Of a stretch of 64,000 nucleotides of DNA, positions 2,954 to 37,216 are shown one piece after another (position 1 is the stretch's first letter; the number at the start of each line of letters is the position of its first letter). The DNA comes from Diplonema japonicum (taxonomy: Eukaryota; Protista; Euglenozoa: Diplonemea): assembly GCA_964019335.1 (NCBI GenBank), contig OZ025708.1:62001-126000 (forward strand), written 5' to 3'. Position numbers and translations under genes: made by a program. The notes under the pieces were generated by a model, which was given only the letters and a program-made list of their open reading frames with translations, was not told the DNA's origin and did not search any database.

Positions 2954-3094
2954 AGGGGCCCCGCAGAACAGGGGGAGCAGCAGATCTACGACCATGCTCC
3001 CTCTCCTAGTCTCCCTCGCATCCTCCCCAGGAGACTCCTACCTCTCTGTTTCTTCACCGACTTTTCTGCACTGATCCCCACCCTACTCGGGAGG

Positions 3095-7243: not shown

Positions 7244-7684
7244 GGGATCGCCCGCGTGTATGTAAAGTGAAATGTTGTGTTTTCCACTTTCCTTTCCCTT
7301 CCTTCACCTTCCTCTCACTGTTTCCCATTTCCCCTTTTTATTTTATTTTCACACTCACCAATGATTCGCTCAATAGGAGCAATACCTCCCTGGGGGGCTT
7401 TCCGCCGGAGGTTCCAGCCAAAGAAGGACATCCAGCTGGAAGGTAGGCCCCCGTTTTTCTCTCACTTGACTGAGGGAATAATGTAATTCAGCCCTCTTCG
7501 GCTGTCCCAAAGCAGAGCACGGGTTGGTGGGGGACCAGGGCTCCTCCTGCTTGCAGAAGCCTGGTCCATTGCCCTCCCTATTTCCCCATGGTTTCCCTTC
7601 ACCTTTTTTTTCCCTTTTCTCAGGTGTTGCTCTCCATGGCGGCCCTGCATTGGTATTTTGAAAAAAAAAAAAAAAAAAAATATC

Positions 7685-7756
7685 GGGTACGTAGCTCAGT
7701 GGTAGAGCGTTCGGCTGCAGTCCGATTGGTCCCTGGTTCGAACCCGGGCGTGCCCT
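7685..7756 (+). tRNA. tRNA-Cys(GCA)
   Basis: Acceptor GGGTACG/CGTGCCC, D arm TAGCTCAGTGGTAGAGC, anticodon loop CTGCAGT, TTCGAAC T loop, U discriminator. Confidence 0.95.
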
Positions 7757-7757
7757 G

Positions 7758-7765
7758 TTTTTTTT
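7758..7765 (+). terminator. Pol III oligo(T) terminator of tRNA-Cys
   Basis: T8 run immediately after the tRNA. Confidence 0.75.
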
Positions 7766-7901
7766 AGCTTCTTGGTACCAGGGCAATGTAGGCTGCTGGG
7801 CACCCATCAATTCCAGCACTTCTCTCTCTCTCTTAACACTTTACACTTTTTTTTTTTTTAACAACAGTGAGCACCCCCATGCACACTGAAATTTTATCGA
7901 G

Positions 7902-8491
7902 TTTTTTTTTTTTTTTTATTTTTTGGCAAATAACAATGGACCCACCCGTGCGAAACTAGGGGGAAGAAACTAAAGGGAGGAGGATATCGGGGTGCACGGC
8001 TGAGTGAACAAGGGACGGGAAAGGCTTTTTTTATTTACTTTCGTTCTTTCTCGTTCACTGGGAACCAAGGAGAGGTAGGGGGGGAAAAAGGTGAAAAGAA
8101 GTTCAAGAAAGTTGGGGGGGTGGGAGGGCTATCGAAACTTGAGAGGAAGAGATGGAGGAGGGAAAAAGAATTAATTAATTTTTTTTTTTTTTTTTTTTAA
8201 AACCTAGAACCCATATCAAACAATCTTTTTCATTTTCTTTCTTTTAAACTTTTAAACTAGGAAGATTAAAAATTTTAAGATAGAAAGAAAAATAAGAAAA
8301 AGAAAGAAACAACAATAAAAATAAAACACAATTTAAGACTAAAACTAAAATTAAAAATAAAAATAAAAATAAGCTCGATGATTTAAAGGAAGCCGGTTGG
8401 GGCACCCTTTGAATAAAATAAATAAAAATAAAAGTAAAAATAGAGAGGGAGAAGAGAAGCAGACAATCAATTGCTTTCTTCTTTTTTTTTT

Positions 8492-8525
<34 letters not shown>

Positions 8526-8684
8526 CCCTTCCCTAAAGAACGTTTTGACCAAAACATTGTTAAGGGAAACAAGGACTAAATAAAATAAAAATAAAAATAA
8601 AAATAAAATGCATGTATGGGGGAGCGCTTTAACGAAAGCATACTAACCCTGTTTCTCTCCCTCTCTTCTTTCTCTCTTTCTTTT

Positions 8685-8729
<45 letters not shown>

Positions 8730-10382
8730 CTCCTTTGTAGTTTTCCCTATTTAACTATCCCTCTCAATTATACTCGCTGTCATCAACCCCCTCCATCTGA
8801 AGGGGGATGGGGCTTCGGGGGGTCGCGCCTTGGGAGCCCCCCTCCGAAGATGATGGTGACAACCTCCCGACATAGGTGTCCATCTCCTCCTGCGCCTCCA
8901 CCCCACGCGCAGGGGCGAGCTGTTTCCTGGACTTTTGGACCTCCACCGACTTCCCTTGTCCGTCCGGGGTTCCCACCATCGTCCCCTCGCTCCCCTCCCT
9001 CTGCCTCTTGTTTGCCCCTTCCTCCTGTTTCACCCGCCTCATCCCCGCCGCGAAATCCCTGTGTCTTTTCCGCGCCTCCAAGACCCTCTGGTACTCCGCC
9101 ACGGGGACCACTTCCCCACCCTCCTCTTGCACCTTCACCAGGTGCAGGTTCCCTTCGGTGCCGTTCGCCATGTTGCTCGCGACTATCCTCCACCTGAACA
9201 CCTCGGGATCCACGTCGGGCTGGGTATTGAGAGTGTAGCTCACCCCCTCTTCCGCCCCCGTGGGGAAGATAGTCACCCTCCTGCCTCCAGGCCGGACCTC
9301 CTGTGCTTGCTCTATCCTCGCCACAAGGTCGTACAGCCTCCCCTCTCCCCCGTCCGACGTGGTGCACTCGTCGCGCAGCAGCTGGGAGTACTCTTCGCTC
9401 TCCTCCCCGCTGCACTCCTCCATCACTTGTTTCACCCTCTGGAGCCACTCCTGTGCGTCGAACTGGGTCTCCCCTTCCGCGACCACATCCCCGTGGTGCG
9501 TGGCGACGACGATGTACGGCCCCTTCGGGTCACGCAACTCCATCTCCGGAAGAATGGCTTGGCTTCCCTGTGCGTCCTCGGCTTCGACCCCGTCGGCTGT
9601 GTGTGTTTGGATTGTGCCTGTCGTGGTCTCTGCCTGCTGGTCCTTCCCCTCGGTGCGTTGGTTAGCTGTTTGATTGTTTTCTGTGCCATCCACCGCCCCC
9701 TGGTTCCGGGCCCCTCCTTCCTCTCCGCTCCTCACAGGGCCAGCTTTTGTGTTTTGGATTGTGCCGCTCCCTGTCTCCTCCTCTCCCATCTCCGCGTCCA
9801 CCCGCTCCGCCGCTGCTTTTGCTGCCGCTGACGCTGCTGCTACCACCGCCGCGGCCGCCAGGTTCGCGGTCCTCCTCTCTGCCTCCTCCTGGAACTTGTT
9901 CTCCGCCGCCTTCGCCGCGGCCAGAGCAGCCATCCCTGTCAGGTAGAACGCCGCCTCAGCTACCTCCTCCTCCGTTCCTGTAGCCGCAGCTTCCCGTTCC
10001 ATCGCCTCCTGATCCTCCCTCTCCCTCCTCTCCTCCTGGGAGTGCTGCTCCGCTTCCGAGTCCAGCTCCATCTTCTCCACCAGGACCTTCCCCTTCCTAA
10101 TGGCCGCCCTCGCCACGCCCTTGACCACGGCCGCCGACACTGCGGCCTTCATGTCGTTGAAGACCTCCACCCTGTGTCGTCGCGTCCTCTTCGCTGCTTC
10201 AGATGCCACCTCCTTCAAGAACTCCCTGGCCTGCCCTGCCAGACCCCCAAACGTTTCCACCGCAAAAGGGCGGAACTGCTTGTGGGCCTCCTTGCACGCT
10301 TCCATGTGCTTCTTGTTCTTCGCCTCCTGGGCCTTGTTCGCAGCGTAGCCAGCAGTTTTTGAGGCCTGTTCCAGGTTGCCCA
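7902..10382 (-). mobile_element. 5'-truncated CRE/SLACS-like (RLE) non-LTR retrotransposon
   Basis: C-terminal half of an RLE domain, long 3' UTR and A-rich tail at ~7902-7924 on the minus strand. Confidence 0.7.
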
Positions 10383-10383
10383 T
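8764..10383 (-). pseudogene. C-terminal fragment of RLE retrotransposon ORF with long acidic/low-complexity extension
   Basis: AA..A...K.KKH...C.....FRPFAVETFGG..G.A..FL........SAAVVKGVA resembles the second half of CRE-clade restriction-like endonucleases; PD motif, zinc knuckle and RT absent; ATG is formed at the junction with the preceding poly(A). Confidence 0.7.
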
Positions 10384-10690
10384 TTTTTTTTTGGTCAAAT
10401 AACAATGGACCCACCCGTGCGAAACTAGGGGGAAGAAACTAAAGGGAGGAGGATATCGGGGTGCACGGCGGAGTGAACAAGGGACGGGAAAGGCTTTTTT
10501 TATTTACTTTCATTTCTTTCTCGTTCTCTGGGAACCACGGAGAGGTAGGGGGGAAAAGAGGTGAAAAGAAGTTCAAGAAAGTTGGGGGGAAGGAGGTCGA
10601 AACTTGAGGGGAAGAGATGGAGGGGGAAAAAGGAGGAAAAAGAAAATTAAAAAGAAAGAAATAAAAAAGTTTTCTTTTTCTTAAACCACC
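10383..10690 (-). mobile_element. Second, very short 3' end of the CRE-like element
   Basis: 10396-~10630 repeats 7927-~8165; both end in minus-strand poly(A). Confidence 0.75.
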
Positions 10691-10713
10691 CTCGGAATAG
10701 GTTCTTTTCTTTC

Positions 10714-11750
10714 TTTTTTTTTTTTTAATAATAATAATAATATTTGTTCCACTGCCAGTGGGGGAGACAAAAGGTGGAGGGAAGATAAAGAGGTTTGAAA
10801 CATCAAAAGTCTGTGTTGCACAGGGTGACATAATTGTGCCTGGCAAATCACAGGGTGAAGCAAGACGGTATTCAGTAAGGGGTGTGTGTGTATACTTCCT
10901 TTCAGATATTCCATTGTTCCATTCTTTCTTGGTCAAAATCTTCTCCTTTTGTATCGCCTATGGCGCAGTCAGTCTGCCTCTTGGCCCCCTAGTATATTCC
11001 TTCGACTGTCCTGCCCATGGCCACCTTTTTTCCTTTCCCCTGGTAGCGCATCCCCCTCAATAGGAAGGATCGTCTTAAGGATTTCGGGGCGACTCTTGCC
11101 TTCGACCGGCCCCGAGCCGTCCCCATGCCGGTTTTTGTTTGTCGTTGGGGCTTGAATAGTTTTTCTTTCTTTCTGTTGTTTATTTATATAGTTTTTATTT
11201 TTTTATTTTTTTATTTTTTTTTTTTTCTTTTCAATACACTGTACCGTCTTAAAAGGAGGGAGGGGTTTTTTGGCAGGGAACGATAATACACTAGGGGAGG
11301 GGAGTGAAGGGAGGATTGTTCGAAGCACTATTTATTCCTTTTTTTTTTCTTTTTTCTTTTTTTTTTTTTTTCTCATTCATTTCATTTCTTTTCTTTTTTT
11401 CCCTTACTCAACACCTTACTTGTCTCGCTCATGAGCCTAATGCTTTTAATAGAGGAAACTCTACCATCCCACGTAAAATAAGATTTATCTTTCAAAAAAT
11501 GTTTTTTTTTTTTAAAAATGTTTTAAAAATGTCTTAATTTATCTCATGGTCACCCCCTACAGCAAGCCAATCTCTTTCAAGAAAGACTCAACTCTAGGGG
11601 ATTCATCGGTCAGGAGTTCGGTGACGGAGTGCGAACCCAGGTGCCTCGCCCTCTCCACCTCGGTCCCCCTGCACTCAATCAGAAGATGCGTGAGGTTTTG
11701 CACCTCTCCACAGAAAGTGCATTTCACGTCCACCTCCCTCGCCCCTTCGC
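10714..11750 (-). mobile_element. Family C 5'-truncated non-LTR element (CCHC C-terminus, 3' UTR, (TTA)n-poly(A) tail)
   Basis: CTFCGEVQNLTHLLIEC...FLKEIGLL* (stop at 11557) is homologous to the family B C-terminus CHLCSMPQTLSHLLKEC...FLEQRGLL*; tail CTGGCAGTGGAACAAAT(ATT)nAn. Confidence 0.8.
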
Positions 11751-11946
11751 GAATTGACCCCACACCCGATCCCGGAACATCCTTACCTGAACTCCGACCC
11801 ACCGGATCCTGTCGACATGTATAAGCCAGGGGAGGTTTGCGAGCCGGAAGCGCCGAGCAAAGACGATGGGTGGGAAGAGCATCACTTGGTGGGGGGTCTG
11901 CGACACATTAAAAACAAATTTAAAAAAAAAAAAAAAAATTACAAAA

Positions 11947-13261
11947 ATGGACCAGACCAACGCGGACGCCTCCACGAGGCCCCCACTGGACAGCTTGCAG
12001 ATGCAAGTCGACGAAGCAGCCGCGGAGGAGGTTCCAGAGATAAATCTGGACCTCGAGAAGAAGGAGGAGAAGGAAGAAGGGAAGGGGCGTCCAGGGAACT
12101 GGGTCATGGGCCCCTTGCCGAAGAAGGTCGACGGGGAGGGAGCGGCAGAGATTCTCGCCGCAACGATAGCAGGAGAGACGGAAAAGGCCGTCATCCTAAA
12201 AACGGCAAATGCCGTCTTTTTACTTTTCTCCGCCGCCACCCCACCAAAACACACCCAAACGAAGGTGAACGGCCAGATAGCGACGCTACTACCTGCCGTC
12301 AAGGTGGTGGACCCCCTCGAGGCAAGAGAGGAAAAAAAGTGGAAAGGGAAGGGCGGAAAGAAAACAAAAAAAAGCCGCCTCAACAGGTACTCGGTAGATG
12401 GATTCTTAGCCCACTACGGGGAAAAGACGGGGTGGAGCCTCTACAAGGAGGCTGTCGAGGACTGGAAACAGAGAAGGGCTCCACCTCCTCCTTCCGCCCT
12501 AAAGTCGAGAGATCCTCAACAACAGCAGAGCCCAGAACACTTAAAGGTTCTGGAAGAGCTACGGGGACAGCAGCAGGTGCTGCAACAACAACTGCAGATG
12601 CAACAGCAACAGCTGCAGCTCCAACACCAGCACCAACAGCAACAACCTCCGGACCAAGACAAAATCCTGGAAATACTGAAGGGGCAGCAGCTACAACACC
12701 AGCAGCAGCAGCAACAACACCAGGAGCAGGTGCAACAATTCCAGCAGCAGCTACAAAAACAACAACAACAACACCAGGAGCAGGTGCAGCAATTCCAACA
12801 ACAGCTGCAGAATCAGCAGCAGCAGCTACAAAAACAGCAGCAGCAACATCAGGAACAGCTACAGCAACAGCAAGTAGCACACCAGGAGACGGTGAAGGGT
12901 CTCCTGGAGCTGGTAAAACAAAGCCAGCAGCAGCTGAAAAAGGACACCTCGGTGATCCAAAAGACACTGCACCAGTTATCACTGGGAAAAAAAAAAAAAA
13001 ACCGCCACAGACCCCGACCAGCCCACGGTAGCCCTGCAGGACCACCCCCTCTCTCTTACGGAGTCGGAGACCGAGCAGGAGGAAACCCCATTAGGGGCGA
13101 GAAGGAGGAGGGTGCCCGAGATGCTAGAGCATCAATCGTCGAGGGAGACCCCCTACAAAACGCCGGAGGGCAGGGGTTCGGCAGGTACTGCCGAAAAGAC
13201 AATCATGTCTACGAACGGGAGGAAGAAAGGCGGGAAAGGTTCCAAAGGTGTAAAGAAATAG
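11947..13261 (+). CDS. Family B1 ORF1 with Gln-rich coiled coil; one extra A in the A-run at ~12988-13001
   Basis: N-terminus MDQ..ADASTRPPLDSLQMQVDE is shared with B2 ORF1; after the A-run the shifted frame (ESETEQEETP..RRR..PY..KGGK) matches the B2 C-terminus and ends at TAG 13259-13261. Confidence 0.75.
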
Positions 13262-13603
13262 TGTTAGTAATAAACAAAAAAAAAAAGAAAGTGTTTTCCC
13301 TTCCCTTTACAAATTCACAAAGCCCCACCCCCCCATTACGTCATACCCCATAAAAAAAAAATAAAAAAAATAAAAAAAAATAAAAAAACAACATAAAAAA
13401 AAAAATTAAAAAAAAAAAACAAACAAAAAAAAAAAAAAAAACATAAAGAACATAAACGAGCTAAAAAAAAAAAAAAAACAACATCAAAAAAAAAAAAGAA
13501 AAACCAAAAGAAAAAAAGTTGTCAAAAGAAAAAAGGAGGACAACAACAACAACAACAACAAGAGGTCTGCAGAACAACACAAGCACTTTGCACAAGAGAA
13601 GTA

Positions 13604-13765
13604 TGTACGACTTGGCTACTTCCCGCGGTCGAATCCTGGCCGGCCCCAACCGAGGGTGTCCACGGGGGACAAGGCGTTAGTGGTGGCGACGAGAGGTCTG
13701 TTAGGGCCGGCCCCCCCCAAGTCGTACAACCCTATCTTCGAAGACCTGAAGGTAGGGGTGACCAC
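13604..13765 (+). promoter_or_regulatory. Conserved pseudoknotted RNA element upstream of B1 ORF2 (candidate IRES)
   Basis: Stems GTACGACTTGG/CCAAGTCGTAC, GGCCGGCCC/GGGCCGGCC, CCCTATCTTC/GAAGGTAGGG; loop AGACCT complementary to AGGTCT; GTGGT/ACCAC; conserved in B2. Confidence 0.6.
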
Positions 13766-13777
13766 ATAGGCAGTGCG

Positions 13778-16700
13778 TTGTTCTTGCAGTACCGACCTTC
13801 GACGGCCGCTTCAATGAGGAAGAGAAGATCCGGACCACATGGGATGGATATCTTGAGATGCGGCGACGTCGAACAAAACCCGGGGCCAGCCGTTGGTGGG
13901 GTGAGGAACGGGTGGCTCAAGATAGTCTCACTCAACGTAAGGTCCCTCAGAGCTAGGAAGGCCGAAATAGAGAGGGCTATCGATGAAATGGCGCCGGACA
14001 TCCTGTGTCTCCAAGAGACACACCTTACATCAGACGATGACATGCATGGATGGTTCGACGGGTACAAAGCCTTTCGGAGGGACAGGACGAGGCCGAGAAG
14101 AAGAGGATTCCCCATTAAGGGCGGCGGCTTGTTGACACTCGTGAAGGAAGGCATCAGCGCCAGCAGGGTTTCAGCGAAGGAGAGCAGGGACGTGACAGAG
14201 AGGCTGGACGTGAAGATCTACCCACCGGGACAGAAAGAGATTCTCCTAGTGAACATTTACCTCCCACCGACATCACCGTCAGATCCCAGCGATGACAGAC
14301 CTGCCATCGACTCATACTTCAACCCGTACTCACTTCCTACTGGAGACAATACCCTGATCATGGGGGACTTCAACGCCCATCACCCACTGTGGGATGGAAG
14401 GAAGAAAAAAGAAGACCCTATAGGAAGCAAAATCGCAGCGTGGATGGTCGATAAAGGGATGAGACCCTGGAACGACAGATATAAGCCCACGCTCCTTAAC
14501 ACAAGAGGGACACTATCCTCGCCAGACTTGGTTATAAGCGGACCTGACATGGAATCTACATCCTGGACAACCCTAGAGTCATGGGGTTCCGACCACATTC
14601 CCATGTCCACCGAAATCAGAACCAAGTTTGAAGTCAAGACGACAGAAAGGAGATTCTGCTTCAAAAAAGCGGATTGGGCTGGCTTCAGGGATTATCTTGA
14701 GCACGCCCTAAGGCACCTGCAGAGAACAGGTGACCCCGTGAAATTGAACAAACAGTTCACGAACGCGATCAAAGAAGCCGCCAGGCTCTTCATACCGAGA
14801 GGTGGAGCAAGAGGTGGGAAAGCGTGGTGGACAGAAGAACTAACGCAGTTAGTTGCTCAGCGGAACGCTCTGAAAAAGGAGATAATGTCAGACATTGGCA
14901 TCCCCTCGACTGAACAGTGCGAAAGACTCGGAGAAATCAGCCGACAAGTGCAGGAACAAATCGTCGTAGGAAAGAAAAGAGCGTGGGCTGAGTACACGAA
15001 GGAATTGTCACAGAAGAAAGACCTGGGGCATGCTTTCAGGACGATAAAGACGCTCGATGGTAGGAAGGGCAAAGAACCTGTGGCGCCGCTGATGGCTGGT
15101 GAAAGATTACACACCACAGCGACAGAGAAGGCAGACGCACTGGTGGACCACTACGCGGAGGCATTTGCACCGCAACTGAACAAGGACACCAAGAGAATGC
15201 TGGAAAGAGTAGAACGACTAACCAAGGAAAACGGTGGTCGGAATAACAGGACCGAGTGCCCCGATATAAGCATCGACGAATTGAAGTACGCACTGAGGCA
15301 ACTTAAAAAGGGGAAGTCCCCAGGCCCTGACGGTGTGTACAACGAGATGTTAAAGCACCTCGGGGAAACGGCCCTGGACGCGATGCTACATCTCTTCAAT
15401 ATGTCGTGGGAGAAGGGTGTAGTTCCGTCGGATTGGAAATACACACACATCGTCCCGCTCTTCAAAGGCAAAGGAAAGCTGAAGAGCGAACCGGCATCGT
15501 ACAGGCCGATCTCATTAACCTCGGGAATTTCAAAGACAATGGAGAGGATAGTGAAGATCAGGATCGACTACCACCAAGACGTGGGCGATGTAAAGAAGGT
15601 TCACAAAATGCAGTCAGGTTTCAGGAAGGGGCGTTCCACTGAAGAGAACGTCTTGCAGGTTACAACGAAACTAGATCGCATCAGAGGAGACGAGTTCTGC
15701 GGGGGTCTCCTGCTCTTTGACCTGAAAGGGGCTTTTGATACAGTCTGGCATAAAGGCCTGAACGCAAAGCTGAGATACAGCAAGTACCCGCAGAGGATAA
15801 CGAACTGGGTGCTGCCTTCCTGGACCAAAGGGTTGCAGCCGTCAAGGTGGACGGCAAGATAGGGAAACAAAGGCAGATAAAAGGAGGGGTTCCACAGGGG
15901 ACGATCCTGGCTCCGACCCTCTTCTCATTATATATGGACGACCTGTCAGCGATTTTCGCAAAGGAGGGAATTGACGCTGTGATGTACGCAGACGACATCG
16001 CGGTGGTGGTTCATGAGAAAGATGTTGAGAAACTGAACGAGAAGCTGTCGAGGGTCCTGAGGATCGTGGAGACTTGGTGTTCCTGGAACTCGATGGTGAT
16101 ATCAAAAGACAAGACAGAGTTCTTGCCAGTAGCGGGCATCTCATATCCCCAAAGGACCCTAAAAGGGAAGATATCGGCAACCTTTGCGGGGGGGGAAGAG
16201 CTCAGGGTAGTTGAAAAAACAAAGCTGCTCGGAGTCACGTTTGAGGAAGACATGTTTTTCGCCGCACATACGGCAGACGTCTTGAGAAGGGCGGAAAGCA
16301 GAGTCAGGCTACTGAGAAGACTGGCAGGGACGAAGTGGGGTTGCAAGAAAGTGGTAATGAGGGCACTCTACCTCACGTACGTACAGCCAGTTTTCCGTTA
16401 CTGTCTGGGGGCGTACGGACCTTTCGTGATAGGCGGGAGGGGCACGTACCACGAAGGAATCCAGAAGCTGCAGTACCGGGCAGCTTTAACGATCACAGGA
16501 TGTGTAGCGACATCAGAGACATTCGCTACACTAAACGAGGCTGGCTTGTGGACACTCGATGCGCTGATCGAACACGACAGTTTACTGCTGTACGAGTCCA
16601 TCATTAGGAAGGAGAACACAGCTGCCTTTCAAGCTACACAACCCCTGAAGGATCTGACCAGATACGAGGTACTGTTCCCGAAGAAAACATGGTCAGATCG

Positions 16701-19994: not shown

Positions 19995-20098
19995 TACTGC
20001 GGTGAGTGATCACGTGGGAAGCCCTGGTGCTGTATCCTCAAAAAGGTGGGGGGTCTGATACACTATCACATAATAAATTTTAATAAAAATTTATAAAA

Positions 20099-21996: not shown

Positions 21997-22005
21997 AAAG
22001 GCAGA

Positions 22006-25992: not shown

Positions 25993-26814
25993 AAAAACTT
26001 ATAAATTATAATATGTTATACTCTCCAAACATTGAGGTCTGAAGTTGTTAAACGACTTCAGACAGCAATTGTTTCTAACTCAATCTCTCGACTCTGGCTT
26101 CACTCCTATCCTTTCTTTTCACCTCCCTCCCCAGTGTCTTCCCTTATTTTCCATTACCAGGCCCCTGTCCCCCGCCCCCAGTGTTATTCAAATTTTTCAC
26201 TCACCTTTCATATAGAAAGAAAAAAGAAAAAAAAAAAAAGAAAAAAAAGAAGGACAGATGATTCAAGCTTCGGTGTACACAATCGAGCTTGATTTGAATT
26301 CCTTTATTTTGAGAAAAAAAAAAAAAAAAAAAAGAAGAAGAAAAAAAAAAAAAAAAAAAAAAAAAAACTGAAGAACGAAACTTAATTGAATTGAATTTAT
26401 TGGCTCCCGAAAGCCCAACAAGTCCAGCAGACGGTGGAGTTTCACAGTCAGCTGGTTAATTTTTCACAATTGAAACTCCTCCAAAGTTCTTAAAATCTGG
26501 GAGGTCGTCTCTTGTTACTAGAGGCGGCTAATGCCTCGAGACCCAGGTGCTGCCTGGTGGGTGGGATCGGTTTTATTTTATTATGAAAAGAGCGTGGTGA
26601 GGGGGTCCAAGTAATTTACTACAGGGAGCAGCGGACCAGGACCCCTCGACCAATGGCTCAGTAACAGAGACTGCTTTTCACGAATCACTTTCAAACACCT
26701 CTCTTGGTTTGAAGTGATGTCCCTTTCCCTTTCCCTTGAATGGTTTTCTCTACTCCCCTTCGATCCTCCCGCCTGGTAGTGGAATATTTATTATTATTAA
26801 AAAAAAAATCTATC

Positions 26815-28913: not shown

Positions 28914-28934
28914 TCGTAAGTTTGACAAAGAAAA

Positions 28935-29888
28935 ATGGGCAAGAAGAAAGACAAGCACAAGGAGAAGGCAAAGCCGGAAGGGAACGGGGCCAGCACGCAG
29001 CTGGCCCAGTCCAAGGCCAGGGAGGAGCGGCGGGTGGAGAGGATGCTCCGCAGCGCGGGAGCAGCCGGGGAGCTGGGGCAGCTCCTGACACCGGAGCACC
29101 GGGAGAAGATGACGGGGGTGGTCACCGTAATTGACCTCCTCACGCCCGACGCCGCCGCCGCTACAGCCGGCCCAGCGACACCTGTCGCCTCCACCCCGAC
29201 CGGCTCCGTCAAAAGGCCGGTTTCGCCTGACGCCAGCGTCGCCACCCCGACCTCCAGCAAAAAAGCTAGGAGGAAGGCCGCCAGAGCCGCGCGCGCTGAC
29301 GCTGCCGCCGAAGCCGCACACATAGCTGACGCCACACACCCCCTCGAAGCCGCACGCACTGCGGCCGACGTCGAACTCGCGGGAATCGCTGCTGATTTGG
29401 AAGCTGCACGCGAGTCGGCCGACGTGGTAGCTGCAGAAATAGCAGCTAAGATGAAGGCTGCGCAGGAGGTGGCTGATGCTGCTGTTGTCAAAATGGCAGC
29501 CGAGACGGAAGCTGCACGCGTGGCTGGTGTGGAGGCTGCTCGCAGAGCAGTCGAGGCAGAGGAGAAGGCTCTGCGCGAGCGGTCTACTGCACGACTTGCG
29601 GCAGAGGAGAAGGAGGCTGCGCGTGCTGCGGCCGAGATGAAAGCAGCCGAGGAGAAGAAGGCTACAGCCGCAGCCGCTGCAGCCGAGAAGAAGAAAGCCG
29701 CAGCCGCCGCCGCCGCCGAGAAGAAGGCCGACGCCGAGAAGAAAGCAGCAGCCGCCGCCGCCGCCGAGAAGAAGGCCGCAGCCGCCGCCGCCGCCGAGGA
29801 GAAGGCCGCCGCCGAGAAGAAAGCCGCAGCCGCCGCCGCCGCCGCCGAGAAGAAGGCCGCTGCCGACGCCGCCAGGAAGAAAGCTGCA

Positions 29889-29919
<31 letters not shown>

Positions 29920-31856
29920 AGAAGGAGACCGCAGCCGCAGCCGCCGCCGCCGAGGAGAAGAAGAAGGTCGCAGCCACCGCCGCCGCCGAAAAGGAAGCCG
30001 CCGCAGCCGCTGCCAAAAAGGAGGAAGCTTTGAGGTTGGCGGCCGCCAAGAAGGCAGATGCCCAGAAGGTCGAGGACGAAGCAGTCGCGAACGCTTCCGC
30101 CAACGCGTCAACAGACCAAGGCACGCTCCTCCTCAGCTCAGACTCTGACACCAGCTCTGGCCCTGAGGAGATGGAGGACGACCCTGCCCCTGCCCCTTCC
30201 ACAACCCCGCGATGGGACCTGGTGCCAGACACATGGGACGCCCCGATCTACACTAACGTGTCCCCCCCGACGGAAACATCCCGCGCTGTCATTGCGCTCG
30301 ACGATCCCTCCGGAATGGGGGTCGTGTGCTCCGCGTTACCTACGGCATCCATCACCTTTGTCCTTATGACAGAGGTCCCCGGTGTCACCACCCCCAGCGA
30401 GATTGTCATGGTCTCTGGGTCGCGCGCAGTGAACAGGAGGGTCCACGTCTCCACGTTCGGGCTGGACCCCCCCACCTACACCCCGCCTTCCACCTTCAAC
30501 AGCGGATCGGAGGTCGTCTACGTCTGTGTCAGTGCAGACAGCCTGAAGGAGGCGAAGGCCAGGGTCCTGGAGCTCGCCAAGGCTCAGGGCGCGGTGGTGG
30601 AGGATCGTGCGGTCTTCCGCCCAAGGAAGTTCGGTGAGGAGGAACCGCGGGCGAGGCACTGGACCCACGAGGTGGGGCTGCGCCTGCAAGCAGCACACGT
30701 CCACGCCGTCCTGCGCCGGTCCGGGGACGGGTGCATGATCCGGACGACGGAGAGACGCGGGGGGTACGCTTATGTACCCATCGTGGCGGAAGGGAGGGCG
30801 GATGCCTTTCGGATTGCGGGGACGCTGGGTGGGTTGTCTCTCGGGGTGGCGCACCGTAAGGGATGGACTGTGCGGTGCCTACCGGAGACGGAACAGCGGC
30901 TCCGGGAAACCCTCGCAAAACTGCGTACGAAGCGCAAGTTTTTGCTCACCGGGGCCCCGCCGTCCATCACCAGGGCGGCCTTCGATGAAATGATGGACCA
31001 CATCGGCTGGAAACCATCCTCCGTCCTGCGGCGCACGCAGACGATGTTCCAGGGCACGAGGCAACTCGTGTTCTTCATCGTCGTCGACAGCCCGCCCCCG
31101 AAGTCCAGGACGTGGCTCCTTGGGGGGCGCCTTGTCTGCCTCCGTGATGCGGACGACCACCCGACCGTCAAGCCGCCCCCTCTCATCAACAGGACGACAC
31201 CTGCATCTGCACCTGCGCTTGCAACGTCCTCGACCCCGGCACCCACATCTTCTCATGTACCTGCACCTGCGCCTACACCTGTACCTGACCCGGCACCTGT
31301 ATCGGCGTCGACACCCTCGGGGACTGACCCTGCGGTGAAAGCAACTGGGCTTCCTCCCACCAGCCCGTGGGCGTCCATACCGAGCTCGGTGGCTCCCCCC
31401 CAGCTCGACACTGTGACGTCCCCTACACCGCCCCGCAACGTGTCTGGGGGAAACAAGGAGGGGGTCCCTTCCGGGTCGCCTGAGGTCGCCGCTCTCACTG
31501 AGCTCGTCGCCACGCTGAAGGAGTCGATCGTCGGGCTGCAGAGGACGATCGACTCTCAGCAGGAGATGATCTCCGATCTGCGGACGACGCTCCGCCTCCT
31601 CCTGCCGCAGGCGGCCACGCTGACGACGGGAACGGCAGTGCCGCGGGACCCTACACCGGGGGCGACGACGACACACGACAGTGTCTGGAAAGGGAAGGGG
31701 AAGGGGAAGAAGGGGGCTCCTCCTCTCGCTACGACCTCTGAGGCTGCGGTGACGAACCTGGGTACGAGGGGGCGGGCCAGGTCGTTCGCGGAGACCAAAG
31801 ATCTCTTCACCAATGGGGTCAAGGGGCGCTCTGCCTCCATGGGTCCATCCAATTGA
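28935..31856 (+). CDS. Family A ORF1 (973 aa)
   Basis: Copy of 101-2953 with longer Ala/Lys/Glu repeat. Confidence 0.85.
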
Positions 31857-31997
31857 AGGGGCCCCGCAGAACAGGGGGAGCAGCAGATCTACGACCATGC
31901 TCCCTCTCCTAGTCTCCCTCGCATCCTCCCCAGGAGACTCCTACCTCTCTGTTTCTTCACCGACTTTTCTGCACTGATCCCCACCCTACTCGGGAGG

Positions 31998-34900
31998 ATG
32001 TCCGTCAGGGACCTGCTGGGGCTGCTTGGGCTGGTCGAAACAAACCCTGGCCCACCCAAGAAGCTGCCGCCCCCGTCGCCTAAGGGTCTCAAGGTTGTCT
32101 CGTGGAACTGCAACGGCCTCGTTGCGAAATGGACCGTCGTATCTCGCCATGCTGACTTCTTGTCGCTGGACATCATCATGATACAGGAGACGCACCTGAG
32201 GGAAGGGCACGACACGCCACACCTGCCTGGGTACAGGTCATACAGGAGGGATCGGTTGACACCGGTGACTGACGGCACTGCGACGAGGGGTGGTGGTATT
32301 GTCACGTATGTCCGCGACGATCTTGCCTCGGAGGAGGTTCCGCACGTACTCCCGGCTGGGGACTGTGTCACTGAGAGACTGGATGTGAGGATCTCCTGCG
32401 AGAAGCGTGAGCCGATCACTCTCTCCAACGTTTACCTTACACCGGTAAGCGCGGGCAGAGGCACGAGGGACCCTGAGTACCTGCGGCCTGGCAGCCTTCC
32501 CATGGGGAAGAACACAGTCATAGCGGGTGACTTCAATGCTCATCACAGCTCCTGGGACGCCACGGTGACGACGCCGAACGAGAGGGGGAACGTGGTCAGG
32601 GACTGGCTGGACACCCACGGGTACACCGTCTACAACGACCGCAACGAACCGACGAGGGACTCGTCACGACACGTTCTGGACCTGGTTGTGGGGCGCTGCG
32701 CGAAGCTTGAGCCGAAGACGCTGGGCACGTGGGGCTCCGATCATAGTCCCGTATCCTTTCACCTGCCTCTTGAGGACGTCTACCGTTCGGAGCGCCCCTT
32801 CCCCACCTGGAATTTTAAAAAAGCCAGATGGGATGACTACACTGCTGCTGTTGCCCGCCTGCTTGCTGGTGTTGACACGGCGGCTCCGATTGACTCTGTC
32901 ACGAAGGGGTTTACACAAGCCCTTTTGACTGCGGCGAACGACCACATTCCCCTCTGTGGGATGCGACGTGGCCCGACCCCCTGGTGGACTGCTGAGCTCG
33001 AGGACGCCTTCGAAGAGCGGAACACCCTGCGCGAACTCCTGCTTCAAGAGGCGGACGTGGTGGAGGAGTACAGGGCGAAGGTGAAGGAAGTCAACCGACT
33101 CCTTGACGAGACGAAGCGTGAGGCATGGGGAAGGATGGCGGCCGACCTCAGCCGGAGCAAGGACCTCGGGGCTGCGTTCAGAGCGGTGAAGAAGCTGGAC
33201 GGCAGGCACCGAAAGACACACCTTCCTGTACTCGAGGGAAGATTTGTGTCGGACAAGGCGAAGGCCGACCGGCTGGGGGCGCACTTCGCTAAGCTCTACG
33301 GCAGGCGTGGTGACGGGAACTCGAAGGACGCCGCTCCTTCTGCAAGCAGACTCGGGTGTCAAGCGTTCACCGTGGACGACCTCACCCGCGGCCTGAGAAG
33401 GATGAAGACGCGCAGCGCGGCCGGGGAAGACGGAATCTTCTCGGAGATGCTCCTACACCTGAACTCGGACTCCCTCGGTGTCCTCCTTCTACTCCTCAAT
33501 CGCTCCTGGCTGATGGGTGTCGTCCCCGGTGCCTGGAAGAAGGGAGTGATCGTCCCGGTACCGAAACCTGGAAAAGATGCGACTCTCTTGGCTTCCTACC
33601 GGCCGATCTGCCTGACCAGCTGCCTCTGCAAGCTGCTGGAGAGGATGATCGAGGAGAGGCTCACGTTTCTTCTTGACGCGGACGGGACGGGAGTCGAGGG
33701 ACTCCACGACAGCCAGGCTGGTTTCAGACGCGGCCGCTCCACGGAGGAGCAGGTGGCAACCCTCACTGAGTGCATGTCGAGGAACAAAGACGATCGACGT
33801 CTCTCGGCCGCTCTGCTGTTCGACTTCTCTTCTGCCTTCGACCTGGTGCCCCATGGTGCCCTGCTGGACAAGATGCGAGGGAAGGGTCTCCCCGAACCCT
33901 TCGTGGAGTGGACGCGGTCCTTTCTATGCGGCCGTACTGCTGCGGTCACGATTGGACGGTCGAGGGGGTCGACGACGAAGGTGCGACGGGGTGTCCCCCA
34001 GGGCTCTGTCTTGGGTCCCATCCTGTACACCATCTACGTCGACGAACTCGCCAGGAGACTGGAGGGACTGGCGGACGTCTCGGTGCTCTACGCCGACGAC
34101 GTGGCGGTTGTGATCTCCTCTGGACAAGGGGACGTGGCTGGGCTGGAGCGGAAGGCGCAGGCAGTGGTGGATGCGGTTGAGGACTGGTGCAGGGAGCGTG
34201 ACATGCTGCTGAGCACGTCCAAGACGCAGGCAGTCTGCGTCCCCCCCCAGAAACGTCTCGGGGTCTACTTCACTTCGTCACGAGTCCCCCTTCAGCCAGG
34301 TGCCTTCCAGAACCCGCTCTTCGGCCTGGGGGTGAACGCCGATGGCACGATCTCCGGGGACCAGGAGCTGGCGGGCCTTCAGGTTGTGGAGGCGGGTGGT
34401 GTGCGGATCCGCTGCGTGCGGGACATGCATGCAGCCGTGCGACGGCCCGACGTGGACTACGTTGCGGCCCGTCCCCTGCCTCTGTCTGAACACGCGAGGT
34501 ACCTTGGGGTTACGGTGGACTCTGGGCTCACGTTCGGTGAACACGCACAGGACATCCTACGGCGGGCCAGCAAAAGGCTGAGGGTGCTGAAGCTCTTGTC
34601 CGGCACGTCCTGGGGCAGCAAGAGGGACACTCTGCGGTCTCTCTACGTTACGTACATCCTCCCGCTGCTGCGCTACTGCATGGGGGTCTACTACAGCAGG
34701 CTCGATGATGTCGGGAGGAAGGACCTGGCTGGGCTTCACCAGGAGGCGGCGGTGCTGATCACGGGCTGCTGGAGTGGCTCCGGAGGGTACAAGCTCCTAG
34801 CTGAGGCAGGACTGCTTCCCCTCGAAAGAATGGCGGAGGGTGCTGCGGCGACGATGACGGCGAAGGCCTTCTGCTGGCAGTCTTCCCCGGTTCACAGGGA

Positions 34901-36146
34901 GACGGTCAAGCTGAAGCAGGCGAACAGGCTGGGGTGTGGGTGGCTGCGCTCTGGCTACCAAGCACTGCGTCGATGCGGGTTGGAACCAAAGGTGCACTTC
35001 GAGTACCTGTCGGCTACGCCCCTGGCGGCCCCGTGGCAGACAGGCATGGTCGACTTCAGGACTGACCTCCCCGGCGGGGTCACGCGATCGTCGCCAGACG
35101 CGGACAGGCGGAAGGCGGCCGAGGCTGCTCTTGCGGCTCTCCCCCCGGGCATCCATGCCTACACGGATGGCTCGGTTGTACAGGTCGGACAGAAGGCGAA
35201 AGGTGGCTCTGGGGTTTATCTACAGCTGCCTCCCCCCCTGACCCCTGTGTCTGTGTGCCATGGCGTCAACGACTTCTGTTCATCTTTTCGGGCAGAGGGC
35301 ATGGCTGTGAAAACGGCGCTGGATATGGTGGCTACCCTCCGAAAAACACACCCTTCGCTGGCGAAGTCCCCGCTGTCGATCTGCACCGACTCCCTCTCCC
35401 TCGTCGAGCAGCTGCGAGCTGGCCCAACGCGACAGAGGGAGAAGCTCGACCACCAGACGTGGAGCCGGCTGGTGACCGCGGCGCGCACGCAGGGGACACC
35501 GGTGGTCCTCCAGTTTGTGCCCTCCCACTGTGGGGTGGACGGGAACGAGAAGGCTGACGCTCTGGCCGGGGAGGGAACGAAGCGGAAGCAGGACAGGCCC
35601 TCCCTTGACTACCGATCAGTGAGGGCCCTGGTGCGACGGTGGGTGGTGCGGAGGTCCACGGAGCTCATAACATCCCTCGCCCACAACTACGCGGTGGCGA
35701 CCGAGCTTCGGTCTGCGCACTTCCCCCTTGGCTTCCCCAGACAAGCTGAAACGGTCATCTCGCGGCTGCGGATTGGTCACTCGGCTCTCTTCTTCGGCTT
35801 CCTGCAGACTGCTGGCCCGAACAGGAAGCACAAGGGTGTGCTCCGGTGCCCAGCCTGCCACGCAGCACCGATGTCCAGGGAGCATGTTGTCGGTGGGTGC
35901 CCTGTGATCGGGAGGGGGGCGATCGACACTCCTGCTGGTACTCCCTCCCTAGCGTTCTCCCTGTCGAGACGCGTGACCCAGATCTACGACCTCATTGTTG
36001 AGTCTGGCCTGCTCGCCTGGTCACGCTCCGGACTGTTCACCTCGCCATCATCCCTGGCGTCTACAGACGTCACTGCACCTTCAAACGTGCCGCCTCCTCC
36101 TCCGGTCTCTCTTGACGCCGGTCCCGCGGCCCCCGTGCTGCGCTAA
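31998..36146 (+). CDS. Family A ORF2 (2A-like, APE, RT, RNase H, CCHC)
   Basis: Same motifs as 3095-7243; intact 1382 aa. Confidence 0.96.
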   Translation: MSVRDLLGLLGLVETNPGPPKKLPPPSPKGLKVVSWNCNGLVAKWTVVSRHADFLSLDIIMIQETHLREGHDTPHLPGYRSYRRDRLTPVTDGTATRGGGIVTYVRDDLASEEVPHVLPAGDCVTERLDVRISCEKREPITLSNVYLTPVSAGRGTRDPEYLRPGSLPMGKNTVIAGDFNAHHSSWDATVTTPNERGNVVRDWLDTHGYTVYNDRNEPTRDSSRHVLDLVVGRCAKLEPKTLGTWGSDHSPVSFHLPLEDVYRSERPFPTWNFKKARWDDYTAAVARLLAGVDTAAPIDSVTKGFTQALLTAANDHIPLCGMRRGPTPWWTAELEDAFEERNTLRELLLQEADVVEEYRAKVKEVNRLLDETKREAWGRMAADLSRSKDLGAAFRAVKKLDGRHRKTHLPVLEGRFVSDKAKADRLGAHFAKLYGRRGDGNSKDAAPSASRLGCQAFTVDDLTRGLRRMKTRSAAGEDGIFSEMLLHLNSDSLGVLLLLLNRSWLMGVVPGAWKKGVIVPVPKPGKDATLLASYRPICLTSCLCKLLERMIEERLTFLLDADGTGVEGLHDSQAGFRRGRSTEEQVATLTECMSRNKDDRRLSAALLFDFSSAFDLVPHGALLDKMRGKGLPEPFVEWTRSFLCGRTAAVTIGRSRGSTTKVRRGVPQGSVLGPILYTIYVDELARRLEGLADVSVLYADDVAVVISSGQGDVAGLERKAQAVVDAVEDWCRERDMLLSTSKTQAVCVPPQKRLGVYFTSSRVPLQPGAFQNPLFGLGVNADGTISGDQELAGLQVVEAGGVRIRCVRDMHAAVRRPDVDYVAARPLPLSEHARYLGVTVDSGLTFGEHAQDILRRASKRLRVLKLLSGTSWGSKRDTLRSLYVTYILPLLRYCMGVYYSRLDDVGRKDLAGLHQEAAVLITGCWSGSGGYKLLAEAGLLPLERMAEGAAATMTAKAFCWQSSPVHRETVKLKQANRLGCGWLRSGYQALRRCGLEPKVHFEYLSATPLAAPWQTGMVDFRTDLPGGVTRSSPDADRRKAAEAALAALPPGIHAYTDGSVVQVGQKAKGGSGVYLQLPPPLTPVSVCHGVNDFCSSFRAEGMAVKTALDMVATLRKTHPSLAKSPLSICTDSLSLVEQLRAGPTRQREKLDHQTWSRLVTAARTQGTPVVLQFVPSHCGVDGNEKADALAGEGTKRKQDRPSLDYRSVRALVRRWVVRRSTELITSLAHNYAVATELRSAHFPLGFPRQAETVISRLRIGHSALFFGFLQTAGPNRKHKGVLRCPACHAAPMSREHVVGGCPVIGRGAIDTPAGTPSLAFSLSRRVTQIYDLIVESGLLAWSRSGLFTSPSSLASTDVTAPSNVPPPPPVSLDAGPAAPVLR

Positions 36147-36545
36147 GGGATCGCCCCGTGTGTGTGTGTTAAATGGAATGTTGTGTTTCCCACTTTCCTT
36201 TCCCTTCCCTTCCTTTCCCTTCCCTTCCCTTCCTTTCCCTTCCTTCTCCTTCCTCTCACTGTTTCCCATTTCCCCTTTTATTTCACACTCACCAATGATT
36301 CGCTCAATAGGAGCAATACCTCCCTGGGGGGCTTTCCGCCGGAGGTTCCAGCCAAAGAAGGACATCCAGCTGGAAGGTAGGCCCCCGTTTTTCTCTCAGA
36401 GCACGGGTTGGTGGGGGACCAGGGCTCCTCCTGCTTGCAGAAGCCTGGTCCTTTGCCCTCCCTATTTCCCCATGGTTTCCCTTCACCTTTTTTTTTCCCT
36501 TTTCTCAGGTGTTGCTCTCCATGGCGGCCCTGCATTGGTATTTTG

Positions 36546-36579
<34 letters not shown>

Positions 36580-36584
36580 GTAAG

Positions 36585-36667
36585 CCTCTCGTAGCTCAAT
36601 TGGTAGAGCGCGCGACTGTAGAACAATAGCCATCGCGCGGCCGCTGGTTCGATTCCGGCCGAGAGGA
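36585..36667 (+). tRNA. tRNA-Tyr(GTA) with 10-nt intron (36622-36631)
   Basis: CCTCTCG/CGAGAGG acceptor, CGCGA-CT-GTA-G[AACAATAGCC]A-TCGCG anticodon arm, TTCGATT T loop, A discriminator, followed by TTTT. Confidence 0.93.
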
Positions 36668-36702
36668 TTTTGCTCCCTGGTCAAATTGTCTCCTACAAAA
36701 AG

Positions 36703-36774
36703 GGGCTCAGCAGGGAATCGAACCCTGGACCTCTCGCACCCGAAGCGAGAATCATGCCACTAGACCACTGAGCC
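36703..36774 (-). tRNA. tRNA-Pro(CGG)
   Basis: Minus strand GGCTCAGTGGTCTAGTGGCATGATTCTCGCTTCGGGTGCGAGAGGTCCAGGGTTCGATTCCCTGCTGAGCCC, followed by T5. Confidence 0.95.
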
Positions 36775-37216
36775 GATAGATTTTTTTTTTTTTTTTTTTC
36801 AAAATACCAATGCAGGGCCGCCATGGAGAGCAACACCTGAGAAAAGGGAAAAAAAAGGTGAAGGGAAACCATGGGGAAATAGGGAGGGCAATGGACCAGG
36901 CTTCTGCAAGCAGGAGGAGCCCTGGTCCCCCACCAACCCGTGCTCTGCTTTGGGACAGCCGAAGAGGGCTGAATTACATTATTCCCTCAGTCAAGTGAGA
37001 GAAAAACGGGGGCCTACCTTCCAGCTGGATGTCCTTCTTTGGCTGGAACCTCCGGCGGAAAGCCCCCCAGGGAGGTATTGCTCCTATTGAGCGAATCATT
37101 GGTGAGTGTGAAAATAAAATAAAAAGGGGAAATGGGAAACAGTGAGAGGAAGGTGAAGGAAGGGAAAGGAAAGTGGAAAACACAACATTTCACTTTACAC
37201 ACACGCGGGCGATCCC

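Follow-up and report, generated by a model that had tools for sequence, protein, structure and literature searches.

LINE families of Diplonema japonicum positioned immediately upstream of tRNA genes

Three tRNA genes and the elements stacked before them

The window, i.e. the whole 64,000-nt stretch of Diplonema japonicum DNA analysed here, contains three tRNA genes, each preceded on its own strand by the poly(A) tract of a LINE. On the plus strand an A20 tract (7661-7680) and the retained leader TATC (7681-7684) lead into an intact tRNA-Cys(GCA) (7685-7756, 61 bits), which is followed by an oligo-T terminator. The second plus-strand junction consists of A32 (36546-36577), TCGTAAG (36578-36584) and an intron-containing tRNA-Tyr(GTA) (36585-36667, 58 bits). 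Convergent with this gene, on the minus strand, A19 (36781-36799) is followed by the leader TCTATC (36775-36780, minus-strand reading) and tRNA-Pro(CGG) (36702-36774). At all three junctions a common 3' UTR, ...CTGCATTGGTATTTTG, lies upstream of the poly(A) and belongs to a 7.6-kb APE-RT-RNase H element, referred to as family A. The original prediction had placed a family A poly(A) tract directly 5' of all three tRNAs and co-oriented with them, at 4, 7 and 6 bp, and the junctions are exactly as claimed. As the tRNAs, the leaders and the downstream flanks are different at each of the three loci, these do not represent one segmental duplication.

The element adjoining tRNA-Cys is a full-length family A copy (copy 1, 101-7680, plus strand) with ORF1 at 101-2953 (950 aa) and ORF2, encoding the APE, RT and RNase H domains, at 3095-7243. 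Residues 11-19 of ORF2 form the 2A-like motif GLVETNPGP (3125-3151), and a short 5' UTR lies somewhere within 73-100, its boundary being uncertain. The next element up in the stack is represented by the 3' end of a different LINE-type family (1-72, plus strand), which reads ...CAGTGGAACAGATA(TTA)n and then A10 (63-72).

Further plus-strand elements follow head to tail up to tRNA-Tyr. A family B element of 6.75 kb (11888-18635) with the tail ...GGTAGTGGAATATTTA(TTA)n-A9 has its ORF1 at 11866-13353 and a frameshift-split ORF2 at 13778-15862 and 15847-17772. Next to it lies A' (18636-19994), a 5'-truncated member of a diverged A-like family with 71-79% identity to family A, which follows TCTA(TC) and has ...TATTGGTATTTTG-A20 as its 3' end. 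In 19995-20043, the terminal ~44 nt of a 5S rRNA and another ~5 nt are fused to the 5' end of a family B2 element; this piece shows 98% identity to the 3' terminal part of the 5S gene at locus L124, and the joint is probably a template-switch product. The B2 element itself (20044-26808; 76-80% identity to family B; tail (TTA)n-A10) carries ORF1 at 20099-21481 and ORF2 in two pieces (22006-24570 and 24571-25992). It is followed by a 5'-truncated family A copy (26809-28913, equivalent to copy 1 positions 5578-7680, poly(A) 28891-28913), the 5' junction of which shows TCTA plus a TC microhomology. The sequence TCGTAAG at 28914-28920 is the left target-site duplication copy of the full-length family A copy 2 (28921-36577, ORF1 28935-31856, ORF2 31998-36146), while the right duplication copy constitutes the entire leader of tRNA-Tyr.

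On the minus strand, tRNA-Pro is preceded by the full-length family A copy 3 (36781-44384), with ORF2 at 37217-41365 and ORF1 from about 41510 to 44362. Behind it lie a minimal family A insertion, made up of just the final 20 nt of the 3' UTR and A35 (44385-44443) and more stacked fragments (44444-48912), namely a family A 3' part (44444-45826), a further A piece (47065-47587) and a B piece (47587-48912).

Genome-wide position of LINE tails

To read the context of family A 3' ends across the genome we used the HiFi/Hi-C assembly of the host (QV 59, PMC13598402), in which the family A tail pattern has 118 exact matches, compared with 0 for the reversed control. The flanks of the first 100 tails were read. 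A co-oriented tRNA gene lies 1-13 nt downstream of 36 of these ends, at a median distance of 6.5 nt and with 19 of the 36 at 4-7 nt, and the tRNAs represent 25 anticodons. The chance expectation is ~0.02 such ends, counting all 1,593 first-look tRNA candidates as real genes; the adjacency is far beyond chance. A 5S rRNA gene begins 8 nt past one end, tRNA-like genes adjoin ~7 ends and another LINE of a head-to-tail stack adjoins ~46, while ~10 ends are unclassified. The predicted position and orientation of 3' ends relative to tRNAs, checked genome-wide for family A, is thus borne out, and the converse situation, in which most ends would adjoin neither a tRNA gene nor a stack, does not apply: at least 90 of the 100 adjoin a tRNA, 5S or tRNA-like gene or a LINE.

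From the side of the tRNAs we analysed 42 genes from 30 loci, picked by tRNA score regardless of LINEs. A LINE tail is found 1-15 nt upstream of 16 of them (about 38%), comprising 6 family A tails and 10 tails of other families with (TTA)n-type ends. The family B tail, with 59 exact copies across the genome, occurs 4 nt upstream of a tRNA-Asp. Tail and tRNA are co-oriented in every case, both in the tRNA sample (16/16) and for the family A ends (36/36), and no downstream or inverted tail was seen at the sampled tRNAs except for those belonging to a convergent partner tRNA. Insertion 5' of tRNA genes is position-specific, as had been proposed, and orientation-specific; it involves any tRNA (25 anticodons), occurs genome-wide and is common to other families. 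Across Pol III genes the targeting is uneven, since a family A tail is present at only 1 of 17 5S genes and none of six U6 genes lies near an A or B tail among the matches listed, compared by coordinates only and, for family A, up to contig C75.

Coding anatomy and relation to known systems

The ORF2 proteins of families A, B and B2 all match the Pfam domains Exo_endo_phos, RVT_1 and RNase_H. In B2 the 2A-like motif CGDVEQNPGP occupies the same place as GLVETNPGP of family A, and the A and B2 ORF2s, both starting with the motif, share 34% identity. The ORF1 products are 950 aa long in A and 460-495 aa in B2 and B; that of family A has no Pfam domain, and BLASTP detects no similarity between the A and B2 ORF1s, although remote similarity is possible. 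A tree of 60 homologues groups A and B2 with two D. ambulator transcripts in a clade of their own (SH-aLRT 99). The poly(A) of family A ranges from A8 to A35 with a median of 19, and an Rfam search with the 5' ends of A, B and B2 gave no ribozyme match. Family A is transcribed, as a D. japonicum transcript is 100% identical to its ORF2. Copies 1 and 3 are 100% identical over copy 1 positions 994-7679 (6.7 kb) and are thus very young.

The elements had been described as Ingi-like. This is justified as far as the APE-RT-RNase H order and the N-terminal 2A-type NPGP motif of the RT protein are concerned, both of which are found in Ingi/L1Tc of the trypanosomatids, also euglenozoan hosts; however, a 2A-type motif is present in other LINE clades as well and is therefore not diagnostic (PMC3894237). 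Members of the Ingi clade have a single ORF without ORF1 (PMC3894237), whereas an ORF1 of 460-950 aa is present here. They are not known to be tRNA-specific and bear the Pr77 hallmark, an HDV-like ribozyme, in their first 77 nt. The 5' UTR of family A is only a 14-40 nt simple repeat, (GAAAA)n, before the ATG. No trypanosomatid protein and no dictyostelid protein was among the 49-51 homologues retrieved. Ingi membership is not supported.

With the tRNA-targeting non-LTR class (TRE5, TRE3, NLTR-A/B) the elements share the APE-type LINE organization, a short fixed distance at many tRNAs and the fixed orientation. NLTR-A of Dictyostelium purpureum is likewise an APE-type non-LTR element with two ORFs, in which an RNase H domain follows the RT (PMC5006619; PMC5911963). 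It occupies the same niche, 2-6 bp upstream of tRNAs (Spaller et al. 2016, PMC5006619) compared to 1-13 nt, mostly 4-7, for family A, and the earlier statement that known tRNA-targeting LINEs insert tens of bp away was overstated. NLTR-A differs in its amoebozoan host, its low copy number and in being a single family; no 2A motif is reported for it and its ORF1 overlaps ORF2 by 13 bp. TRE5-A of Dictyostelium discoideum, another APE-type LINE, keeps a fixed orientation in its insertions 5' of tRNA genes and uses 5S rRNA genes as targets too, and tRNA occupancy is large in both hosts (61% of tRNA genes with a TRE element vs 16/42 here). TRE5-A is targeted through the Pol III complex, with an ORF1p-TFIIIB interaction and B-box dependence. 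In contrast to the elements described here, its insertions lie about 48 bp upstream (37-41 bp at 5S genes), and it is a member of the L1 group that carries a zinc finger in place of the RNase H; the TRE5 class as a whole lies about 40-54 bp upstream and lacks RNase H, whereas here RNase H is present and the distance is 1-13 nt. Moreover, targeting of TRE5-A is determined by ORF1p, whereas the site described here is common to two families whose ORF1s are unrelated. Ty3 of Saccharomyces cerevisiae and DGLT-A of dictyostelids also insert a few bp from the Pol III start of tRNA genes and leave the gene intact, but these are LTR retrotransposons that use an integrase and no target-primed reverse transcription.

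Retrotransposons that target tRNA genes are a textbook case of how mobile DNA settles at safe sites in compact genomes, and diplonemids are among the most abundant marine heterotrophs. Our literature search found no report of tRNA-targeting LINEs in diplonemids or other Euglenozoa, and all described tRNA-targeting retrotransposons are from fungi and dictyostelid amoebae (review table, PMC5911963). The same strategy is now placed in Discoba, a distant branch of the eukaryotes, and given the distance between the hosts the targeting has likely evolved independently.

Target-site duplications and the probable route of insertion

The target-site duplications begin at the poly(A) and span the tRNA leader, and the tRNA is thereby left intact. 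Besides TCGTAAG in the window, they read GCAGGTCAGCT (L119/L120), GAAAACAA (L074/L073), TCTTGCAG (L077/L076) and TCCGTATCC (L108/L110). At two 5' junctions, where only the left copy was read, the tRNA itself is included, with 16 nt of a tRNA-Lys (L097) and 46 nt of a tRNA-Arg (L117). The second strand is cut precisely at tRNA -1/+1 in about half of the duplications that could be read, while the first-strand nick is spread over 13 nt, even at paralogous tRNA-Val genes with the same leader (L149/L150). One full-length family A copy (L078/L079), flanked by the duplication TAATAAT, has an A tail on one side and a truncated B2 on the other and lies kilobases away from the tRNA, demonstrating in at least one case that insertion at existing poly(A) junctions inside stacks also occurs.

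We consider it quite likely that these are active APE-type LINEs of D. japonicum which insert by target-primed reverse transcription at one narrow site and thereby build up stacks, with the site being read through Pol III, the determinant residing in ORF2 and the trait predating the split of A and B. The junctions show that the bottom (tRNA-template) strand is nicked just 5' of the gene, so that the poly(A) ends against the remaining leader, and that the second strand is cut at or downstream of tRNA +1. The leader, sometimes with the first 3-46 nt of the tRNA, is duplicated on the 5' side of the element and an intact tRNA gene is regenerated downstream of it. Repeated use of the same site by A, A', B, B2 and others yields co-oriented head-to-tail stacks ending at the tRNA. 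Given the variety of leaders and tRNAs and the insertion at a 5S gene, the cue may be the Pol III transcription complex, through TFIIIB, TFIIIC or Pol III itself at the start site, and not the DNA sequence; tethering to the Pol III machinery can reasonably be inferred, with indirect support from the 5S insertion and the ~7 tails at tRNA-like genes. The A and B2 ORF2s are homologous (34% identity, one clade) while the ORF1s are unrelated, which would locate the targeting determinant in ORF2 and suggests that tRNA targeting is older than the A/B split.

Alternatively, an element protein, i.e. the endonuclease or another ORF2 domain, might itself bind the DNA of the tRNA gene, at the A box or within its 5' half, and cut at a fixed distance upstream without Pol III factors, comparable to the sequence-specific APE LINEs of the R1/TRAS type. 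The placement of the site relative to the mature tRNA 5' end, with the A box constant at +8 to +19, the exact -1/+1 cut in about half of the readable duplications and the rare or missing hits at 5S and U6 genes would fit such direct binding. We nevertheless regard it as rather unlikely, because a 5S rRNA gene, which has no A box at +8, carries one clean insertion 8 nt upstream, 25 anticodon families with differing 5' sequences are hit, and the nick varies over 13 nt even for the tRNA-Val paralogues that share a leader. The elements could also home mainly into poly(A) junctions of resident LINEs, which would make the association with tRNAs secondary. The ~46 of 100 family A tails that adjoin another LINE, the L078/L079 copy and the 20-nt A tail with A35 inserted between two A copies are consistent with this. 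However, 36 tails lie directly at tRNA genes with 25 anticodons and varied leaders, implying that the founding insertion of each stack chose a tRNA, the tails in the tRNA-side sample lie 1-15 nt from the gene, and the same tRNA-proximal nick with leader duplication accounts for most LINE-to-LINE junctions, so that self-targeting as the main route appears improbable.

Neither selection nor a flaw in the assembly offers a convincing account. Random insertion followed by purifying selection, which spares copies in harmless places such as the regions upstream of tRNAs, draws on the general argument that compact, gene-dense genomes counter-select genic insertions (PMC5006619), but it cannot yield a 13-nt window, the strict co-orientation (36/36 and 16/16) or duplications matching the leader, and copies that are 100% identical and hence very young are already at tRNAs; we consider it very improbable. 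The probability that the three loci of the window are one segmental duplication or an artefact of assembling a repeat-rich region is smaller still. The window does contain long 100%-identical repeats, and Logan contigs assembled from independent runs end at the poly(A), leaving the junctions unspanned. On the other hand, tRNAs, leaders and flanks all differ, and the same type of junction recurs at 36 or more further loci spread across many contigs of the QV 59 HiFi/Hi-C assembly (PMC13598402).

Returning to insertion at a site read through Pol III, a more specific scenario is possible but tentative. A diplonemid LINE clade with the order 2A-APE-RT-RNase H and interchangeable, unrelated ORF1s might have evolved an ORF2-encoded docking on the Pol III initiation complex, with a template-strand nick near the start site and a second cut often exactly at tRNA +1, independently of the ORF1p-TFIIIB route of TRE5-A. 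The stacks would then be expressed as read-through Pol II units, which trans-splicing of the spliced leader and the poly(A) tracts encoded in the elements would divide into pieces. Since two families share the site but not ORF1, ORF2 is the place to look for targeting, and the elements, several families of which compete for the same ~10-bp window, provide an independent model in which to study how LINEs that use target priming read the Pol III machinery. The arrays bear on how tRNA gene promoters tolerate the full replacement of upstream DNA, and they matter for the annotation of diplonemid genomes. A spliced-leader-bearing retrocopy of a LINE is present at locus L106, a hint at read-through Pol II expression with trans-splicing.

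Family A tails and tRNA genes

The three tRNA genes of the window, tRNA-Cys(GCA) (7685-7756, plus strand), the intron-containing tRNA-Tyr(GTA) (36585-36667, plus strand) and tRNA-Pro(CGG) (36702-36774, minus strand), are called by ARAGORN and Rfam, and each carries a co-oriented poly(A) run immediately 5′, preceded by a shared 3′ UTR ending in ...CTGCATTGGTATTTTG. The spacers between poly(A) and tRNA are TATC (Cys), TCGTAAG (Tyr) and TCTATC (Pro); on re-reading, these and the co-oriented family A tails matched the original prediction exactly. All three tRNA-abutting elements are full-length copies of family A, a 7.6-kb LINE, and copies 1 and 3, which precede tRNA-Cys and tRNA-Pro, are 100% identical across 6,686 nt. 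As the tRNAs, leaders and distal flanks are unlike each other, the three loci do not stem from one segmental duplication, the origin that would have undone the prediction.

The genome holds 118 matches to a 22-nt family A tail pattern, against none for a reversed control. We read the sequence 3′ of the A run at the first 100 of these 118 places. A canonical tRNA gene begins 1-13 nt past the tail in 36 of the 100 (median 6.5 nt, with humps at 4-7 and 10-13 nt), always co-oriented (36/36) and representing 25 anticodons in total. By chance, even with all 1,593 first-look tRNA candidates counted as genes, ~0.02 of 100 random points would land so close (up to 13 nt) before a co-oriented tRNA. Within this family A sample, the distance and orientation of the 3′ ends bear out tRNA targeting. 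The sample includes places before tRNA-Gln and tRNA-Val genes (L065, L093, L071 and L150). One further tail lies 8 nt before a full 5S rRNA gene (102.6 bits), and ~46 abut another LINE, at either its 5′ end or a 5′-truncated body. Approximately seven precede tRNA-like genes, uncalled by ARAGORN and Rfam, that show A/B-box-like motifs and close with oligo-T, while ~10 have no classified target, none of them named by Rfam at relaxed thresholds. The tRNA-like genes (genomic places L067, L087, L096, L098, L116, L146 and L155; motif example GGTTCGAAT), for which ARAGORN was run at default settings, could represent SINE heads, further Pol III genes of another kind, or diverged tRNAs, as one of them shows a TCA anticodon-like loop.

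The association is also seen from the side of the tRNA genes. In 30 loci chosen by tRNA score alone, comprising 42 tRNA genes, a LINE tail lies 1-15 nt upstream of 16 genes (6 family A, 10 other families), again co-oriented in all 16 cases; the non-A tails end in (TTA)n-An or ...TTATTGC-An. The only tails downstream of the sampled tRNAs are those belonging to a convergent neighbour tRNA. Convergent tRNA pairs with co-oriented head-to-tail LINE arrays (stacks) on both sides recur, namely Tyr/Pro in the window and Trp/Arg and Asn/Asp elsewhere in the genome. The tail of family B, another LINE of the window, has 59 exact genomic copies, one of them 4 nt before a tRNA-Asp and opposite a family A tail before tRNA-Asn. 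Together these data establish a real, strong and genome-wide case of tRNA-gene-targeting LINEs. No tRNA adjoins the element in 80 metagenome contigs, which are too short to show flanks and so carry no information on conservation, and Logan contigs (901 bases examined) end at the poly(A) and are hence uninformative on junctions, RNA ends and read-through.

Insertion geometry and target recognition

In readable flank pairs the target-site duplication begins immediately after the poly(A). Around family A copy 2 it is TCGTAAG (28914-28920 and 36578-36584, plus strand); elsewhere, both flanks were read for GCAGGTCAGCT (L119/L120), GAAAACAA (L074/L073), TCTTGCAG (L077/L076), TCCGTATCC (L108/L110) and TGTGA with microhomology (L135/L134). 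Roughly half of the duplications end exactly at tRNA position -1. At two 5′ junctions with an unpaired right-hand flank the upstream copy holds part of the gene itself, i.e. 16 nt of tRNA-Lys (L097) and 46 nt of tRNA-Arg (L117). This layout is the one usual for target-primed reverse transcription, with a first nick on the bottom strand at the border between poly(A) and leader and a second cut on the top strand at or within the tRNA 5′ end, so that an intact tRNA gene is always regenerated downstream.

The leaders share no common sequence, the first base past the family A tail being T in 16 cases, G in 11 and C in 9 (hand count). The dissimilar leaders, the 25 anticodons and the use of a 5S gene at -8 favour recognition of a feature common to Pol III gene starts, for example TFIIIB or Pol III, over recognition of a DNA sequence. 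A uniform Pol III rule is disfavoured, since only 1 of 17 5S genes carries a family A tail and, by coordinate comparison only, no listed A or B tail is close to any of six U6 genes. The main rival to recognition of a Pol III start is an element protein that would read the A box or the tRNA 5′ half directly.

Precedent, proteins and relatives

The insertion position had been thought unlike that of known systems, which does not hold: NLTR-A of Dictyostelium purpureum, a two-ORF APE-RT-RNase H LINE, resides 2-6 bp ahead of the mature tRNA sequence (Spaller et al. 2016, PMC5006619) and is closest in behaviour to the D. japonicum elements. TRE5 inserts ~50 bp upstream of tRNAs, and six independent origins of tRNA targeting are counted in dictyostelids (PMC5006619); 5S genes are likewise among the targets of TRE5 (PMC5911963). 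The table of Pol III-targeting retrotransposons in a 2018 review holds fungi and dictyostelids only (PMC5911963). The position thus has a precedent, but the lineage is new. The genome note on D. japonicum YPF1604 is without a transposon analysis (PMC13598402), the D. papillatum genome paper names LINE-like gene models but no tRNA association (PMC10161547), and full-text literature on diplonemids, ingi/L1Tc and tRNA targeting yielded no report of such targeting in Euglenozoa. Targeting of tRNA genes by LINEs is thus now found in a lineage without a previously known case.

Family A has two ORFs, ORF1 (950 aa; no Pfam domain) and ORF2 (1,382 aa; Exo_endo_phos, RVT_1 and RNase_H), which share one frame, with a TGA and ~140 nt between them. 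A transcript-derived D. japonicum protein (EukProt) is 100% identical to family A ORF2. The ORF2s of A and B2, a further LINE family of the window, are 34% identical over 894 aligned residues, and both open with a 2A-like motif (GLVETNPGP in A, CGDVEQNPGP in B2). While the ORF1s of B and B2 are 42% identical, no similarity was detected between those of A and B2, and neither the A-type nor the B2-type ORF1 matched a solved structure.

The RT tree, built from a fast alignment limited to RT columns and from 60 homologues with no named reference clades among them, groups A and B2 with two D. ambulator transcripts in one clade (SH-aLRT 99). The nearest relatives are D. ambulator transcripts, at 41-44% identity, along with environmental contigs that bear no label; the protein Atlas matches are generic APE-RT-RNase H clusters only. 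Single-sequence and profile searches returned no named ingi, L1Tc, dictyostelid or trypanosomatid protein among the homologues. As the A and B2 ORF2s are homologous and fall in one clade while their ORF1s show no similarity, the simplest reading of the sequences would trace tRNA targeting back to the ancestor of the Diplonema A/B2 clade and place its determinant in ORF2. A remote similarity between the two ORF1s is possible.

The label 'Ingi-like' is weak. Domain order and 2A motif agree with it, but 2A is found in several LINE clades, the homologues retrieved include no trypanosomatid protein, and elements of the Ingi clade have no ORF1 (PMC3894237), whereas A and B2 have a large one. Both A (101-7243) and B2 (20099-25992) combine this large ORF1 with an N-terminal 2A motif in ORF2; 2A-bearing LINEs are mostly without ORF1 (PMC3894237).

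Stacks and their history

The stack before tRNA-Tyr in the window runs B, A′ (a diverged A-like family), a 5S fragment, B2, a truncated A and a full A. The An-TCTA(TC) junctions at 18636 and 26809 fit repeated insertion at the TCTATC leader of tRNA-Pro, with leader duplication and 2-nt microhomology, and a later inversion between the oppositely oriented A copies on either side of the Tyr/Pro pair. With this putative history, 'orphan leaders' generated by RNase P are unneeded. The 5S fragment (19995-20043) comprises the last ~44 nt of 5S rRNA between the A′ poly(A) and the first base of B2, is 98% identical to a 5S gene elsewhere in the genome (L124) and resembles the product of reverse transcriptase switching its template to 5S rRNA at the B2 5′ end.

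Short minus-strand LINE fragments with tails ...CCATTGTTATTTGCC-An and (TTA)n lie within 7757-11887. This minus-strand stack (from 7847) stops ~90 nt downstream of tRNA-Cys and is aimed at the 3′ end of that gene. The 83-nt gap between them yielded no Pol III gene, and a hidden repeated gene is ruled out because the gap is single-copy. A non-coding element of ~1.15 kb (49261-50405, minus strand) ends in the tail ...CAGTGGAACAGATA(TTA)n-A10, as at 1-72, followed by TATCGGGT, which is identical to 7681-7688, where the tRNA-Cys leader and the gene's first 4 nt lie; it contains a weak HDV-like ribozyme match (50283-50350, RF02682, 26.8 bits, E 0.027; gathering score 44).

In L106 (assembly contig G000:C51, 159588-159909, minus strand), a family A tail is followed by a near-complete spliced-leader (SL) sequence, ...CCAACGATTCTAAAGCTACAGTTTCTGTACTTTATTG, joined directly to the 5′ end of another LINE family (AAAAGAATC-ATGTCGACC); L097 has that 5′ end without the SL. 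Apparently, LINE mRNA can be SL trans-spliced and then retro-copied with the SL. Exact copies of the SL 3′ half number 210; they are dispersed, and many lie close to contig ends. Two loci of the same contig, L109 (497859-498180) and L111 (523792-524113), share the composite A tail, TACACGAAACG and the last 44-217 nt of A. The 11-mer TACACGAAACG is similar to the leader at a tRNA-Met site (L090), and the composite points to read-through with 3′ transduction of what was once a target-site duplication.

Runs of T16-T27 lie directly upstream of several 5S rRNA genes (L246, L251, L253 and L255), the one in L246 being preceded by the reverse complement of a hairpin-like sequence found 3′ of a family A tail in L100. 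The host genes beside the stacks (51444-53180 and 58306-61656, both minus strand) encode a BspA-type leucine-rich-repeat protein, with 75-nt tandem repeats in its coding sequence, and a CAP/SCP-domain protein.
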